A stretch of DNA of 64,000 nucleotides from Chrysemys picta bellii (taxonomy: Eukaryota). Under the pieces are notes generated by a model, which saw only the letters and a program-made list of their open reading frames with translations, did no database searches and had not been told where the DNA came from. The position numbers and the translations under genes were made by a program. This document shows positions 47,815-62,105 of the stretch, piece by piece; positions within the stretch are counted from its first letter, which is position 1, and each line of letters starts with the position of its first letter. The stretch is from contig NC_088792.1 of the NCBI RefSeq assembly GCF_011386835.1, positions 153,078,001 to 153,142,000 of the forward strand, in the 5' to 3' direction.

Positions 47815-50800
47815 ATGCACCTTCCCTGCTCTGTTTCTTCTTGTTGGCATGAAATCTTCACTGGGCTGGATACAAAGCATTTGGTTTTACAGTCTCTTTT
47901 GTCATGCTGGTGTTAAAGAAAACCTTCCTGATAATTGAATTTCTGCACGCCCAGGTGTACCATGGTGCTCAACAACCAAGGTCACAGGTGCTTCTAAAAA
48001 GCCTAAAGAGAGGTAGGATTCTAGATTTTGAACCAGGAAATTCAAACTGGCATGGCCTCTCTGAGCAGGGTCACACAATGGAGGTCCCATGTTATTTTAA
48101 AGGGATTTTGATTTGCTTAACCTAGGGTTGCATCATGGTGTTCAGCTAATCTGCACTCAAGCAGCAGCAGAGGTGGATCTCAGGACCTTACTGCAAAAAC
48201 ACAGGCTCTTTATGACACACAAAATCTACACAAACTCTCTTCTTTCCCTGGAAATAGAGCTTTTTACTTTCTGTACATTACCACTACCTCGCCGCTAACA
48301 CCTACAAGTATACACCAGCTAGTATGTTACACTGAGCCTATTGATTTGGGTAAATGTGCCTTAAAAAGAAAGATCAAAAAGTGCAGACATATAGAAGAGC
48401 AGTGTGGGCTGGTAAGGAAAGCCCCCAGCCTAGGGAAAAAAAATCTACCACCTCACCTCTCTCTTTCAGGCCCTTCCATTAGGGTAGAGTTGTTGAATTC
48501 AAACATAAAACAAAGCTATTTCCCTGGTAGACACAGGCTCAGAGACCATTTCTTCTGTAGCCTCTTTCTGCTCCAGGGCCAATCCCTCAAACCAACCCCT
48601 CTTGCAGTTCCCCTCCCTTACTCAGACACTTGCAGGCTTTTATACTGTAATTGATCCCTTCCCAGGTGGGTCTGATAATGGGAGGGGGGGGGGGCCTGGT
48701 CCGAGGCCCATAACGGGACAGATCACTCTGTTACAAGCAGGCTTCAGTAAAGCTTACAGGGCGGACTTACTCTGTGTCAGCACAAATGGTGGCCAAAGAA
48801 GAACAAAGCAAGCAGACCAACAAATAAGAAATTTAAGTGATAGGCAAAGGGAACTCTCTCCAGTGGACGAATGAAAGTCTGATGGGCAAAGTTTATTTGC
48901 TTTTGTGCCACTGAATTACTGCTTTCTTCTGAAGGGTCTGAAGCAGAAAAAACAGATGTGACCAGCCCAACCCTACCTTCTATCCAGTTCAAATTTGGCA
49001 GCAATACAGGCCTCTTCGATATACAAGTTTTACAGTAATGTCCTTTAAATTAGTTACAGGTGTATAGACTATGTGCTAATCTTGGTGAGATTATTTAGGA
49101 TTCAAATACTCCCCTTGAAACACAAACACACATACTGGCTAGTGGGTGAAATCTGCACAACAGAGACCCTCTGTGTCAAAGACTGTGCAGTCTAAATGAC
49201 TAAATTAATGCAATATGCTATTCTCAGACCAAATAGGTCTCTGGCAAGCTAGCTGGAGGAGAGTCTAGTTTGCCAAATTCTTGATGATGAAATCTAGTCC
49301 TAGATTTGTGCAATGTGTCTACTCTGCTGGGCTACCGTCAAAGGACGGTTACCCCTTTTTGATCTGAGCAGTTAGCCAAAGTCCAGGACCTTGCAGGTTG
49401 TTTCCATGAGGGGGAGACCTTGATGGTGGAGTCAGGTATCTGAAGTTTTCCTGTTTGTTTACAAAGAATGTACAAAGTTCTGTTTGCCAGAACAGGAACC
49501 AAATAGCAAGAGACAGTTTCTTTGCTCACAGTGTCAAGCCCCTTTCAGCCAGCACTCAGCCCAAAAACCTCTCTGTAGCTATTCAAAGGGCTACGCTCAC
49601 AGTGCGGGTGCTTCCTTGCTGCCTTCTCTCTACGTTTACTGGTCTTTCTGCTGTTTCATATATATAAACCTCCACAAAACAGTGTGAGCCAGCAACACAC
49701 CCCTCTGTTGTCATTTCTCTTAGACACAGGTTAGATGTATTTTAATGATAGAGCCTAGCAGCAGGGGCCTGGGTTCTCTAGGCACTACTGCACTGCAAGG
49801 TACCTATTGTAGTCTCAGTTTAAGAGAGGGCAGTGTGAAATACAGAAGTGAAGAGCTGCACTTTCTAAAATGGCCACTGATCATACAGAAACAAAATATG
49901 TGATCAAGAGTCAGGCAAAAACAAAAAGGATCAGGTCTCTGGAACAGACACTCTCTGAGTATTTGACCAGCACTCAGCCCAGTGGAAGGAACCCTGATCA
50001 TGGCTGGGGTCTGAGGCTACTGTTGTAACAGAACTAATGAATACAGTGTTTGTCCCAAGTTATGGAATTTTGTTGGTTCTTTCAAAGCCAGAGCTCCTGG
50101 AATGATGTGACTATCTTACATTAGTTTTAATAAAAAAAAAAATACAGTTAATTTCTAGCCCTCAGCAGGGCTAGAGAAGAATAAACACTAAAAGCACAAA
50201 AACTAGAACGTACAGAAAAAGAACCCCAAAATGTGTTTGCATTTTTTAAATCCTACTCCTTTTAAACCAATGTTATGATCTTTGGGGAGCAGCGGCCTGA
50301 TTTTTGAACACTGAGGGTTGGAAATATTGCAAATAAATAATGGAGTTTTTCACCCCAAATAGGAAATGTTTTGTTACCCTAGCATATAAAATTTTGCTCA
50401 TTTTTTTTAAATGCATAGGGCTTGCAAATATTTCTAAGCCAACCGCCTGGTGCCTCGCTGGGGCACATGGGGACAGGGTAGCAGTGGGTTTTGCAGAAGC
50501 ATTGGGGTTGCTACTTCTGTAGTGCTAATAAAAGAGAGATGAGCCTGGGCCCATAAAACAGGACCGGTGGCCGTGTATAGGGAGCTCTTTGATGGCTCTC
50601 CCGGGCCAGGTACCCGAGCAAGGGGACAACCTGGACAGGTGGGAGCCTGAAGCGGCAGGGAGAGAGCCCCTGCCCCTACTGGCCCCTGGGAGCCCCTCCC
50701 CCCACTGTTTGGGCTTAACCAGGTAGCAGTGCTGCTCCCCAAGGCTGCAGCGGGTTTGTTGCAGTGGGAGGAAGCGGCCTGCCCCGGGCCAGGCGGTGGG

Positions 50801-51011
50801 GTGCGCGCGCCCCATTCCCTGGCCTCTGCTGCCCCTAAACTCTCCACCCCGCCCCTAACAGGCCTGACCCCCAGCGGAGCCCTCGCTGCAGTTCCCCCCT
50901 GCGGCCGGCAGAGGCCGCCCTGGCGCCCCCGACTCCTTCCCAAGCAGGCGCCTGGGTGGGGCAGCCCCGCGCCGGGGGTCCTGAGTCCGGCCGCCGGCGC
51001 CTCGGGAGAGC

Positions 51012-51023
51012 CAAGATGGCGGC
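51012..51023 (+). promoter_or_regulatory. NFU1: TISU / YY1 element CAAGATGGCGGC overlapping the NFU1 start codon
   Basis: 12/12 match to SAASATGGCGGC. Confidence 0.8.
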
Positions 51024-51065
51024 AGCGGCGCGGTGGCTGCGGGCGGCGGCGGGGCTGGGCGGCCG
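51016..51065 (+). CDS. NFU1: NFU1 exon 1 (MAAAARWLRAAAGLGGR), start of mitochondrial presequence
   Basis: Strong Kozak ATG in the CpG island, CG|GTAGGT donor in phase 2; Ala/Arg-rich with no acidic residues. Confidence 0.9.
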
Positions 51066-51149
51066 GTAGGTGACCCCGGCCCGGGCTCGGCTCGTCGCAG
51101 CCCCGCCTGGGGGGGTTAACTCGTCTCCAGCCAGGGGGAAAGAGGGTCC

Positions 51150-51440
51150 CCCCTTTATCTGCCCTCCCCCCCGCGGGCCACCCGCTTTATCTTCCCGTCC
51201 CCCGCGGGTCACCCCCTTTATCTTCCCGTCCCTCGCGGGTCACCCCCGTCATCTGCCACCCCCCAACTCCCCCTCGCGGGTCACCCCCTCATCTTCTTCT
51301 CCCCCCCCCCCCCCCCCCCGCGGGCCATCCCCCCTGAACTTCTTCACACACACACACACCCCGCGGATCACTCCTCCCTTATCTCCCCCCGCCCCACTTA
51401 TCTTCCCCACCCCCGCGGGTCACCCCCCATCTCCTCCCCC
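51150..51440. repeat. Degenerate ~30-bp C-rich minisatellite in NFU1 intron 1 (core CGCGGGTCACCCC..TTTATCT)
   Basis: About seven CGCGGG(T/C)CA units and five TTATCT copies separated by C-runs. Confidence 0.85.
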
Positions 51441-52162
51441 CCCGCCCTGGCGTGTTGGGTGTTAATTCCCCCCCCCCCCCCCCGCAATGGAGAGGAGGAA
51501 GAATAGCTGATTACAACGGTCTCGTCTGGCCTTAAAAAAACAACAACAACAAAAGCTGTGAACTATTGACCTGATCCACAATCCCCACCCAGCGTGTGAC
51601 TGGGAAGAAGGTTTTATTATTTGTATTGTCATTGTGCAGCAGAGCCATAGTCATGGGTCAGGACCCCGTTGTGCTAGGCAAGGCGCAAACACAGCATAAA
51701 AAGATGGTCCCTGTCTCAGAGAGCCTGCTGGGGTGCAGGGGGTGGGAATTGTTTCCCTCCAGCCCTCTGTGCAGGTTGCCAACTCCATCATCAGCATATG
51801 GGAGAGAGAAAGAAGCATCTACACATGTGCATCAGGGAGGAGGGTGCTACCAGGCGCAACAGGATGGAGTTGTCTACTCACCCCACTTTATGCTTGTGAG
51901 ACATGAGAGCATAGTGCTAAAATTAGTTAAGGTTACCACCCACCCTTAACATTAAGTCCTAAAATACCTTAAAGACATCTGGGCTTCCCTCAGCATCCAT
52001 GCCCTTCCCCACTGTACGGGGGAAGTGGGGGGGAAAGGGATACTACAGCAGGTCGCCTTATGCTCCCAACCCTGGTGTGTGTTGCTGTGTTTGAGGGGGA
52101 CACACAATGAGAATGAACTGCTACTGCTAATGGTGTGTTAAGTCTACTGGCTTTGTATGTTC

Positions 52163-52468
52163 TAGGGATGTAAAACGTTAACTGGTAAGCATTAGTCTTA
52201 CCAGTTAGTCCGCCTTAACCGTTAAGTCCTGGGCTGGTCGCAGCCCTGCCTGGGCGGGGGTTAACTCCTCGCCAGCCAGGGGGAAGGAGGGTCCCCCCTT
52301 TCCCCTCCCCCCCGCTCCCAGCGGCCCCACGCCAGCCGGAGCAGCACTGCCCACCTAGAGCGCCCCCAGCAGCGGCCATGCTGGCCGGATCGGCCCTTTA
52401 ATGAATTAACTGTTTAAATGAAATATTTTAAATCGTTTAAACGGATAACTTTTTTATTTATGTCCCTA
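52163..52468. mobile_element. hAT MITE (TAGGG-type ends) carrying a copy of NFU1 intron-1 sequence
   Basis: TIRs TAGGGATGTAAA / TTTATGTCCCTA; TSD GTATGTTC / GTATATTC; interior 52238-52301 matches 51095-51156. Confidence 0.85.
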
Positions 52469-53238
52469 GTATATTCCCTGTGAACTATCACTGAAAGGCT
52501 GGGTAGAGAGCAACTTCTACATCTCTACAATGAGGAAAGGGTTAAAAGGACCCTAGTAACTCAAAATTATCCCAATTGCTTAAATTTTGTAAACAAACTC
52601 TTACAAAAGTTGTTTAAAAAAAATCAACAACCTCCTGCTGAGGTCTGAAAGCGAAACTGACTCTAAGTGTGAACCTGACCATCTGTTTTTATTGTCCAAA
52701 CCCAGAGAGAGGGAAGCAAAGAGTAAGCAGTCTAAAGAAAGAAATCTGGATTAGATCTTAAAAAATTTTTTCTGTAATAATTCAAGGTGCTTGTTAGTAA
52801 CAGATAAAGATATCTGTCACCATATAATTACAACATCATTGTCTGAAGATTCTTGGAAGCTAGAAGTCATAGCTTAGATTTTCTAATTGTGGATATTTTC
52901 ATGCCAAGTTTGTGCATGTGATTATAATGATTGCACAAAACAGGAATTTGCATGTGAAAATGAAATGTTTTTTGTATTCCTGTTTATTACCTATTTAATC
53001 ATGGTAATTATTGAGTACAAATATTCACCTAGACTTTTGAAAATCAGTTTAGTCCATCTTTTCACCTCTTCAGGTTTGTTCTTCTCAGCGTATTCTTCAT
53101 CCTTTTGTCCACTTGAGGTCTGTGTGTCTCAACAAGATGGGTGGTGTGGTCTACCTGACCAACCTCGACAAGAATTTTTTGTTATAGCTGGCCTGGTTCC
53201 ACTCCAGGGCCCTGGTCTCCTGCTGCTGGATACGAATA

Positions 53239-54337: not shown

Positions 54338-54470
54338 GGGGGGAGGGATAGCTCAGTGGTTTGAGCATTGGCCTGCTAAACCCAGGGTTGTGAGGGGGCC
54401 ATTTAGGGATCTGGGGCAAAAATTTGTCTGGGGATTGGTCCTGCTTTGAGCAAGGGGTTGGACTAGATGA
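54338..54470 (+). mobile_element. Turtle tRNA-derived SINE, B box deleted, fused to CR1
   Basis: GGGGGAGGGATAGCTCAGTGGTTTGAGCATTGGCCTGCTAAACCCAGGGTTGTGAG|GGGGCC; tail matches the CR1 3'UTR up to GGACTAGATGA. Confidence 0.88.
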
Positions 54471-55756
54471 TCAGCATGGATTCACGAAGGGGAAGTCGTG
54501 CCTGACTAACCTAATTGCCTTCTATGATGAGATAACTGGCTCTGTGGATGAGGGGAAAGCAGTGGATGTGTTATTCCTTGACTTTAGCAAAGCTTTTGAT
54601 ACGGTCTCCCACAGTATTCTTGCCGCCAAGTTAAAGAAGTATGGGCTGGATGAATGGACTGTAAGGTGGATAGAAAGCTGGCTAGATCGTCGGGCTCAAC
54701 GGGTAGTGATCAATGGCTCCATGTCTAGTTGGCAGCCGGTTTCAAGCGGAGTGCCCCAAGGGTCGGTCCTGGGGCCGGTTTTGTTTAATATCTTTTGATC
54801 TGGAGGATGGTGTGGACTGCACTCTCAGCAAGTTTGCAGATGACACTAAACTAGGAGGCATGGTAGATACACTAGAGGGTAGGGATCGGATACAGAGGGA
54901 CCTAGACAAATTAGAAGATTGGGCCGAAAAAAACCTGATGAGGTTCAACAAGGACAAGTGCAGAGTCCTGCACTTAGGACGGAAGAATCCCATGCACTGC
55001 TACAGACTAGGGACCGAATGGCTAGGTAGCAGTTCTGCAGAAAAGGACCTAGGGGTCACAGTGGACGAGAAGCTGGATATGAGTCAACAGTGTGCTCTTG
55101 TTGCCAAGAAGGCTAACGGCATTTTGGGCTGTATAAGTAGGGGCATTGCCAGCAGATCGAGGGACATGATCGTTCCCCTTTATTCGACATTGGTGAGGCC
55201 TCATCTGGAATACTGTGTCCAGTTTTGGGCCCCACACTACAAGAAGGATGTGGAAAAATTGGAAAGAGTCCAGCGGAGGGCAACAAAAATGATTAGGGGT
55301 CTGGAGCACATGACTTATGAGGAGAGGCTGAGGGAACTGGGATTGTTTAGTCTCCAGAAGAGAAGAATGAGGGGGGATTTGATAGCAGCCTTCAACTACC
55401 TGAAGGGGGGTTCCAAAGAGGATGGAGCTCGGCTGTTCTCAGTGGTGGCAGACGACAGAACAAGGGACAATGGTCTCAAGTTGCAGTGGGGGAGGTCCAG
55501 GTTGGATATCAGGAAAAACTATTTCACTAGGAGGGTGGTGAAACACTGGAATGCGTTACCTAGAGAGGTGGTGGAGTCTCCTTCCTTGGAGGTTTTTAAG
55601 GCCCGGCTTGACAAAGCCCTGGCTGGGATGATTTAGCTGGGAATTGGTCCTGCTTTGAGCAGGGGGTTGGACTAGATGACCTCTTGAGGTCCCTTCCAAC
55701 TCTGATATTCTATGATTCTATGATTCTATCTCCTGAGGTCCCTATGATTCTATGAT
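54471..55756 (+). mobile_element. Young 5'-truncated CR1 LINE; RT nearly intact with one frameshift (~54795)
   Basis: [49 protein letters not shown]; (ATTCTATG)n tail. Confidence 0.97.
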
Positions 55757-59205: not shown

Positions 59206-59341
59206 TAAGATGCATGTTTATTCAGACTCAAGACACTCCAAATCCAAATAGTTTGAAGTTTATTCCAGGAAGACAAGTACTGGAGTCGAGAACCATGGAT
59301 TTCTCCACACCAGCTGCAGCGTTTTGCTCACCTTTAGCGAG
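59206..59341 (+). CDS. NFU1: NFU1 exon 3 ([46 protein letters not shown])
   Basis: Strong acceptor, AG|GTGTGT donor; [19 protein letters not shown] is the NFU1 N-domain signature. Confidence 0.97.
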
Positions 59342-62105
59342 GTGTGTTCAAGCATTACATACTTTGTTCAAGGGACTATCTGTGGTAGTTACTGAAACAC
59401 ATGTATATACAAGTGTCATCATAAATGCAGCTGAATGTTAAAGAGCGGATTTGCTGCATTTCCATTGTGGATGCTGCTTTTTTTCATAAAGTAGATTGAA
59501 TGCCTAGAAAGAGCCAAAGTAATCTATCGAGATTTTTATACTGTGCATGTCAGTGTGATAACTAAGTTCCTGGTCATCTATTTCATTGATCTGAATCAAA
59601 TCATGATAGCATTCATTATTCCTGAAAAGGAAATATACTGTTGTTCATACCTGTGTTCCGGATCCTGCAAAACTTTACTGAATAGTCCTTACGCTAGTAG
59701 TCACATTAAAGTCATGCCAACTCCCAGTGTAATGAGACAGGCGACCTGAGGAAATGTCCATAAATGTCATATGTGAAAGTGAAACAGTTTACTAATTTTG
59801 GCACAGTTAATAACTTTTAACATTAGCTTCAAAGCCATTGGGTTTTTTCTCTCTTTAAAATATGGGTGTGTTACAAACAGTACAGTGGAAAAATTAAAAT
59901 TACTCAAGTTTATAATGAACCCTTTTTTCTAGTCTTATTCATGTATAATCTTTTGCAAAGGCCCTCAGTGCCATAGATCTGGAGTATCCATAGTGAAACT
60001 TACTTGGACTAATACAGTTCAATCCACTTGGACTATGAATCATTACTACAGTTTGTTTTCCATCTAATACTTTGCTATATTTTCATTGGGTAAAAAAGGG
60101 CTGGGACACCATTAAAGGTCTGTCTGAAAGTGGGGGATGGGATGGGAAGGAGTCATAGGAGTCTTTTGCCTGCTGATAGTGATGAGATGCCTTGGAGAAC
60201 TGTTGCAAACTTGCTTCCTGGGGAAAGTGGGTGTGAGCACTGCTTCTGGTATCTGCCATTGCATCAATAGCAGCCTCTGGAGATAATGCTCCTTATACCT
60301 GCTATGTATGTGGGTGGAGAGGCTGCAGTGGGAGGGTGAGATATGGAAATGCCATAGTGTCACCTTCCCAAGATCATAGTTTAATTTTCTCTTAAACGTG
60401 ATGGAAATACTGCACACAAGTGAAAGCAGCTTAATGCAGCCCTCTCTCTGGGAAACGTAGCATTATCCAGGGTATTGCTATAATATTTCCAAAATGCTAT
60501 AGTTGATTTGTAACCAAACAGGAACTTTACAAATTAAGTTCTTTAGCTCAAAGGTAGTAGAAATGCCCATATGTATAGAACAGCAGATGTTTCAGGCTTT
60601 GTAATTGGGATGCCCATTTGTTTTGGCATGAGAATACAAATCTTCCAAAGAAATAATATCAGCTATGCTAGCGTTAAATGATTTGGAGTGCACGTGTAAC
60701 TCCAAAATATATTTTAAAGTAAAATTTTGGGACCATTAGTCCATCAAGCAAATTAGGGTGTGATGATATTTAAAAACAACAACCCACGCACAACATGCAC
60801 AGCTACATTTTTAACATTTAAAAATTGTTTGTTACGTGTATAGGAAAGTTCCTTTTTGCCATACATAACCTGTGGTAAAGTATCTGATTTGTGCATCTCG
60901 AATTGAATAGATTTCCCCTTTAAGAAAGTCTATTTTTCAGCTATTTATACTACTGAAAATGTATTCTGTCTCTGTTTTCAAGATTAGGATTACCTACAGT
61001 GTTTTGTATGAAAATGCCAGATTTAACTTCTGTTTGTTCTAGCTATTCTTTATCGTATCCCTGTGGGTGACAACAGACAGTCATTTAATCTGTGGTCTAG
61101 GTATTAAGATTGTATAGATTTAAAATTACTGACTCCTGTGGCCACACAAACAAAACTGAGCATTTGTTGAGATGCCTTTAAAACTCTCATGCTATTATTT
61201 TATCGTTAGAATAGTTTGTAATCAAAGTGTGTTCTTGTTTCCTGTCTGGTTCTAAAGTTTTAGTGTGTTGGTCTGAATTTGTGTGATGATTGTTTAAATA
61301 CGGTACACCAAGGTAGTGAGGAATGAAGTATCAAGCTTAGATCTCTCTTAATATTTAATTTTAGAATTTTAATAGTGTTTTAATTGCACTAAGCAACTGA
61401 AGGTAGCAAAATTAAGTGAAACGGATATTTTGATAAACTCTGGTGCCCTTGCTTTCCGAGTAACCGCAACTTCAAATTCACCAACGTCGCCACAGAGTCA
61501 CTCACATACCATAACAATGAATAAAGATTTGAAGATTCCTTACACATTAAGCTGGCCTGTTAAAACCTTGTGGGCTACTCTGCACTGAAAAGTTATTGCA
61601 CTGAACAGCAACTATCGCCAGAGTCCTAGTTCAGTTTGTTTTGGGGGAGTCTCTATGGAAGGAACAAAATTCAGAACAGCTTTTAGTAAAATAGATTATA
61701 TTTAAAAGTTTTCAGCAACCTAATCTACTATTCTAAAGAAGAGTCCCTGTCCTTCCACAGTTGCATGCCAGGAATGTTTGTGTGTGTGTGTGTTGGTCAT
61801 CCTTGATGCTGATCCAGTAGTTTTATGGATAAAGAATACCCTCTTGGCTTCAAATCGGAGCTAGAGACATGTTAACAGGAAAAAATAACATGCTGTATGT
61901 TCAGTATCACACTCCATGGTATGATGTTTTCTACTTATGCCAAGCTGCAGAATTCCATTGCCATGGATAAAGAATAGAAGCACTTAAACTGTAGAAGAAC
62001 CCTTTGCCAATCTCCTTTAATGGTTTTATTTTCTTACGTGATGATTGCCCTCTAGAAATGTATTCTTGTAGGAAAGCAAGAAAGACAGTAGAACATGATT
62101 GATAG

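Follow-up and report, generated by a model that had tools for sequence, protein, structure and literature searches.

In plant Pack-MULEs and Pack-TYPE elements, transposon ends enclose host-derived DNA; what they enclose is typically a fragment of a gene or exon, and a large number of these elements have been amplified to several copies with separate target duplications. Filler DNA was also reportedly described by Rubin and Levy in 1997 in Ac/Ds and other hAT deletion derivatives, where it was put down to abortive gap repair. A reptile precedent exists in the hobo-type hATs of Anolis, in which the filler is often another transposon and the filled elements have been amplified (Novick et al., 2011, PMC3014272). 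A published animal set comprises 370 Pack-TIRs in 100 genomes, 208 of which are hATs (Tan et al., 2021, Nat Commun 12:4280, PMC8277862), and the statement in an earlier note on the present locus that transduplication is little described in vertebrates is therefore out of date. In that set, 57% of the elements lie within 15 kb of their parent, most of these within 5 kb, and the single-copy cases are attributed to transposition-independent gap filling; for 94% of the primate single-copy Pack-TIRs, outgroups have the element at the corresponding site in its bare form, so that capture came after insertion (PMC8277862). The survey of 100 animal genomes contains no Pack-TIR for the painted turtle (PMC8277862).

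We analysed a stretch of 64,000 nucleotides of painted turtle DNA (the window) that contains a 306-bp transposon-like unit at positions 52163-52468. The interior of this unit includes 87 nt that are also found 1.1 kb upstream, immediately behind a putative first exon of NFU1. We consider it probable that the unit is a 'Pack-hAT' present in one copy, that it arose when a gap was filled from a nearby template independently of transposition, and that the DNA passed from the intron to the element and was captured in place.

The gene was recognised from an open reading frame at 59214-59438 (+) that matches the Pfam domain Nfu_N (PF08712; E 7.7e-11, 42.3 bits against a cut-off of 27, profile positions 1-43), with the exon encoding the start of this domain at 59220-59345 (+). 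Because the Nfu_N exon lies downstream on the plus strand, the gene is identified as NFU1, transcribed from that strand. Its putative exon 1, read from the sequence as extending from an ATG to the donor GTAGGT, is located at 51016-51065 (+) within a CpG island (50760-51500; GC 0.74, CpG observed/expected 0.66), and the element sits in the 5' part of the gene, likely in intron 1. No effect on NFU1 is evident, and the captured piece is non-coding. Two overlapping open reading frames of 124 and 307 aa at 54424-55636 (+) match RVT_1 (E 3.2e-18 and 9e-4), and this region is a LINE fragment within the NFU1 intron.

Elements of the hAT superfamily have short TIRs that start with YARNG. The 306-bp unit begins with TAGGGATGTAAA and ends with TTTATGTCCCTA, and its ends are of the YARNG type: the 12-nt TIRs at 52163-52174 and 52457-52468 show a 10/12 inverted match, the 3' end reading TAGGGACATAAA when reverse-complemented and agreeing with TAGGGATGTAAA at 10 of 12 positions. 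On either side of the unit lies one copy of an 8-bp TSD, GTATGTTC at 52155-52162 and GTATATTC at 52469-52476, identical at seven of eight positions (chance P = 3.8e-4, calculated for the NFU1 copy only). A Tc1/mariner reading, which implies a TA target duplication, was rejected, as it offers no explanation for the agreement of the 8-nt flanks at 7/8 positions. The two arms are AT-rich, with GC contents of 0.40 and 0.24, and enclose a GC-rich interior (0.75). The 5' arm (52163-52227, +) comprises its TIR, a hairpin at 52181-52206 and GTTAA-type subterminal repeats; the 3' arm (52393-52468, +) ends in the other TIR, and both arms have the sequence depth of a high-copy repeat. Further copies of the element were absent from the 64-kb window, both by blastn (word size 7) and by searches with 20-nt end patterns allowing up to 3 mismatches, and exact-pattern scans of metagenome contigs with two conserved arm motifs gave 0 matches each. 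The description of the unit in the earlier note as a hAT MITE with TIRs and an 8-bp TSD thus holds for its ends, its target duplication and its multi-copy arms, and the data support the view that it is a TIR- and TSD-bounded, non-autonomous member of a multi-copy hAT-like family.

The shared segment was initially delimited as 52238-52301 in the element and 51095-51156 in the intron, with 4 mismatches and one 2-nt indel. This match was borne out, and the homology proved to be longer: 52229-52315 (+) aligns with 51086-51174 (+) in the same orientation, with 79 of 91 columns identical, 6 mismatches and three 2-nt indels (blastn within the window, E 1.7e-20). The start-to-start distance from the intron segment to the filler is 1143 nt, in cis and on the same strand. 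The intron segment is non-coding and starts 21 nt past the putative end of exon 1 at 51065, which agrees with the earlier placement of position 51095 at 30 nt downstream of the exon-1 donor. Its last 31 nt are at the same time the first unit of a locus-specific 31-nt minisatellite at 51144-51450 (+), which Tandem Repeats Finder reports with period 31 and 3.6 copies over 51144-51254 and which continues in degenerate units to about 51450. As had been proposed, the intron copy is without transposon ends: neither 20-nt end of the element (up to 3 mismatches) matches anywhere else in the window, blastn found no transposon arm beside the segment, and the depth over 51070-51281 is that of single-copy DNA.

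Both stretches are 71-75% GC and contain C-runs, and such low-complexity sequences could resemble each other by chance. The local alignment score of 64, however, lies about 14 standard deviations above the scores obtained with 300 dinucleotide-preserving shuffles of the CpG island (22 +/- 2.9, maximum 35), so that GC-richness is not the explanation of the match; together with the blastn E value this leaves a fortuitous resemblance with a practically negligible probability. An Rfam scan for a structured RNA common to the two copies gave a chance-level match only, at 24.5 bits against a gathering score of 97.

Whole-genome contig sets exist for the source species (A) and five relatives; we aligned the region 51070-52650 of the window at 80% likeness to those of four organisms, namely A and the related species B, D and E (runs X1, X6, X9 and X10). 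Copy counts refer to assembled contigs at 80% likeness or more, which may collapse or drop repeats and from which some records were filtered out. In run X1, from organism A, summed depth is about 17 over the single-copy flanks, as against 1068 and 2192 in the bins of the 5' arm and 554 in that of the 3' arm (52395-52447; range 554-1201), whereas the interior bins (52236-52394) have depths of 31-37 and the filler itself of 31-33. This pattern of high arms and a low interior is alike in B, D and E. Over the four genomes the arms reach about 30-130 times the single-copy value, a summed depth that is not a copy number and that corresponds to roughly a hundred copy-equivalents of the arm family. 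The depth of the interior, about twice single copy, is made up of the element's own contig (15.9) and the cross-aligned contig of the intron (17), and the bins of the intron copy have a depth of about 21.

The other family copies align over 52162-52230/52237. In each run, 19-21 contigs follow the 5' arm, diverge at 52225 and continue for a median of 143-205 letters unlike the NFU1 copy, with a GC-rich consensus (CCCCCAGCCCGG...) whose agreement is only 0.55. Other contigs join 52182-52237, at the end of the 5' arm, to 52393-52427 in the 3' arm, in one case across a spacer of only 34 letters. Upstream of 52162, and thus over the left target duplication, the flanks of other copies are without agreement (0.4), which fixes the 5' end of the family at this point. 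The earlier note held that its account would fail if the shared segment belonged to the family consensus, in which case the intron copy would be a transposon remnant. The family does have a GC-rich core, and a distant relationship at less than 80% identity is possible; but with an interior at about twice single copy in all four runs, as opposed to arms at 30-130 times, and with the contigs of other copies diverging at 52225, the filler is not family consensus, and we regard the remnant reading as very improbable. In every adequately covered genome, the 87-nt segment occurs in two copies only among assembled contigs at 80% likeness or more, the one in the element and the one in the intron. The main use of this locus is as a worked example of how profiling the depth of arms versus interior separates true filler from family sequence.

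For the rest of the GC-rich interior the outcome was different from what had been suggested, namely that 52315-52400 might be a second captured piece. No source for it is present in the window, where 52316-52392 finds just weak GC-rich matches of 64-67%, leaving a local source unsupported. In addition, 52358-52427 can be aligned to a contig from another member of the family (9 mismatches, 3 gaps), so that at least 52358-52392 (+), adjoining the 3' arm, is the element's own GC-rich core. A short family copy likewise has similar letters between 52225 and 52406. The remaining stretch, 52316-52357 (+), is close to single-copy depth, has no convincing match in the window and could be family core that has diverged or else additional filler. 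Consensus strings of 30 letters, taken from the loose ends of the family core (agreement 0.55), score 11-14 against the core of the element, the same as against unrelated GC-rich intron.

The arrangement is shared by the related species. In B, D and E, contigs run from the unique flanks through the arms and the filler; the intron copy is likewise present in contigs of B and D, while E has thin cover there. An empty site at the orthologous loci, which the earlier note had proposed to look for, was not seen in the contigs of B, D and E, and neither was a filler-less element; all three carry the element with its filler, and the structure is thus old and fixed in these species. B, D and E differ from A by about 2% at the locus. 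The filler differs from the intron copy by about 7% substitutions (6) and by 3 indels, i.e. by about three times the divergence between species, and therefore either the capture is several-fold older than the split of these four organisms or errors were made in the copying. With 6 substitutions and 3 indels between the copies, the event appears to be old, and its breakpoints are blurred. At 52271, B, D and E have T, as does the intron copy; one of the mismatches consequently arose in the lineage of A, and in the common ancestor filler and intron copy resembled each other more closely.

One rearrangement within the element was seen in this comparison. In contigs of D and E, the 51 nt at 52195-52245 are on the opposite strand between collinear flanks (joints 52194/52245 and 52195/52251). 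The inverted stretch starts in the loop of the arm hairpin at 52181-52206 and spans the junction of arm and filler. In A and B the stretch is collinear with the family arm as well as with the intron copy, and the inversion therefore seems to be a derived state common to D and E; alternatively, it may be an assembly artefact at the hairpin.

How the 87 nt came to be present twice can be pictured as follows. A non-autonomous hAT-type element would have inserted in the 5' part of NFU1, producing the 8-bp target duplication. A later break inside the element, at the border of the 5' arm and the GC-rich core, would have been repaired by synthesis that switched to a template on the same chromosome, 1.14 kb upstream and directly behind NFU1 exon 1; some 87 nt would have been copied in the same orientation before synthesis returned to the element. 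That the filler is not family sequence and that its parent is without transposon ends makes template switching during gap repair the best mechanism. We likewise take it that host CpG-island DNA was copied into the element from about 1.1 kb off; both proposals had been made in the earlier note. The absence of the piece from any other element copy that we found fits capture in place. The label 'Pack-type' that the earlier note gave to this capture is not supported in the Pack-MULE sense of capture followed by spread, for no second element copy with the piece was found in the contigs of the four genomes.

The direction of transfer deserves separate consideration, as sequence identity alone gives no direction. 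The 87 nt could instead be element interior that was copied into the intron by ectopic conversion or repair, or the intron copy could be the remnant of a stripped sister element, and the minisatellite could then have grown from the end of the inserted piece. The stretch homologous to the intron starts at 52229, and the family sequence stops at 52225-52237; this coincidence of borders is expected if foreign DNA was put into the element, but would be unexplained if the element was the donor. The interiors of other family copies differ as well, so that the piece would still need an origin outside the family, no arm remnants are found beside the intron copy, and a full sister element at that position would have overlapped exon 1. 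A transfer from element to intron is therefore quite improbable in our estimation. A somewhat better case can be made for a history in which the element, then at another site close to the NFU1 CpG island, acquired the piece while an excision gap was being repaired, and subsequently hopped about 1 kb to its present site, where the 8-bp duplication was formed. The target duplication does flank the whole 306-bp unit, and no outgroup with a filler-less element at the NFU1 site was found among B, D and E. A tendency of hAT elements to reinsert at linked sites is, moreover, established for Ac/Ds. The hop nevertheless needs one step more than capture in place, and no second element copy with the filler was found among the contigs of any of the four genomes. 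The primate set also points the other way, since its single-copy cases have, in 94% of instances, a bare element at the same outgroup site (PMC8277862). We hold such a hop to be unlikely and retain capture in place, by copying from the intron, as the probable history.

With respect to the animal Pack-TIRs, the NFU1 element has three of the characters by which these are recognised: ends of a recognised family around non-family DNA, an identifiable parent without arms, and a parent in cis at less than 15 kb. The likeness to the set of Tan et al. extends to the short non-transposon DNA within TIR ends, the single-copy nature of the captured piece, the hAT affiliation, which is the commonest among the carriers, and a parent without transposon ends that sits in cis, no more than a few kb away. 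The breakpoint again falls inside the element, little of whose sequence seems to have been lost. Indeed, the layout, with the parent 1143 nt off, in cis and in the same orientation, is the commonest one in the animal Pack-TIR set (PMC8277862). There are three differences: the NFU1 case is older than their 'young' cases, the identity of filler and parent being 87%; an outgroup with the unfilled element, on which their argument chiefly relies, was not found for the NFU1 element among B, D and E; and the captured piece is intronic CpG-island DNA rather than an exon.

The features of Pack-MULE-like elements, a piece present in at least two element copies with different target duplications and an origin of the piece in an exon, are both absent here. 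What the NFU1 element has in common with plant Pack-MULEs and Pack-TYPE elements is that transposon ends enclose host-derived DNA; it differs from the Pack-MULEs in that the piece was found in one element copy only, is non-coding and comes from 1.1 kb away, with no mobilisation seen after capture. In the Ac/Ds derivatives and the Anolis hATs, as proposed here, foreign filler in the interior of a hAT element was acquired during double-strand-break repair with template switching. The filler of the NFU1 element is, however, unique neighbouring host DNA that has not been amplified, unlike the often transposon-derived filler of the amplified Anolis elements (PMC3014272). The NFU1 element thus exemplifies, in an old and single-copy form, a process that has already been catalogued in vertebrates, and no new mechanism is involved. 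Possibly no such case has been noted in a turtle before, given that the 100-genome survey has none for the painted turtle (PMC8277862). Its value lies in being a clean, well-bounded example of double-strand-break repair patching a resident transposon with neighbouring DNA, in a slowly evolving genome where, even at a considerable age, donor and patch are both still readable next to each other.

The low agreement (0.55) of the interiors of other copies and the many arm-to-arm joints with other letters between them hint at a wider phenomenon, namely that this hAT family is unusually prone to uptake of foreign DNA at the junction of the 5' arm and the GC-rich core, and that many copies carry different fillers. 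We regard this as a long shot. If it were true, the NFU1 copy would be just the one whose donor is still visible next door, and the family would be a vertebrate counterpart of the plant Pack elements, shuffling CpG-island or promoter-proximal DNA.

Lastly, several minor features in and downstream of the intron copy were observed. One contig of run X1, from organism A, matches perfectly except that exactly the 31 nt of 51185-51215, one minisatellite unit, are missing; the number of repeats consequently differs between this run and the assembly of the window. Small indels are present at 51156-51165 in B and D. At two C-runs, 51301-51319 (19 nt) and 51468-51483 (16 nt), the short-read contigs of all four species break, and the corresponding bins show spurious depth of up to 70913 (X6), so that depth readings of these bins call for caution. 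Another high-copy interspersed repeat occupies 51494-51758; at 51653-51705 its summed depth rises to 2205 in A and to 5825 in B. Variant letters are numerous in it, consensus-like flanks run on from both of its sides in other copies, and it is probably a common turtle SINE or a fragment of another retroelement. After 51896, B, D and E have seven extra letters (TGAGACA); the site looks like a short tandem duplication, with one unit less in A than in the other three.
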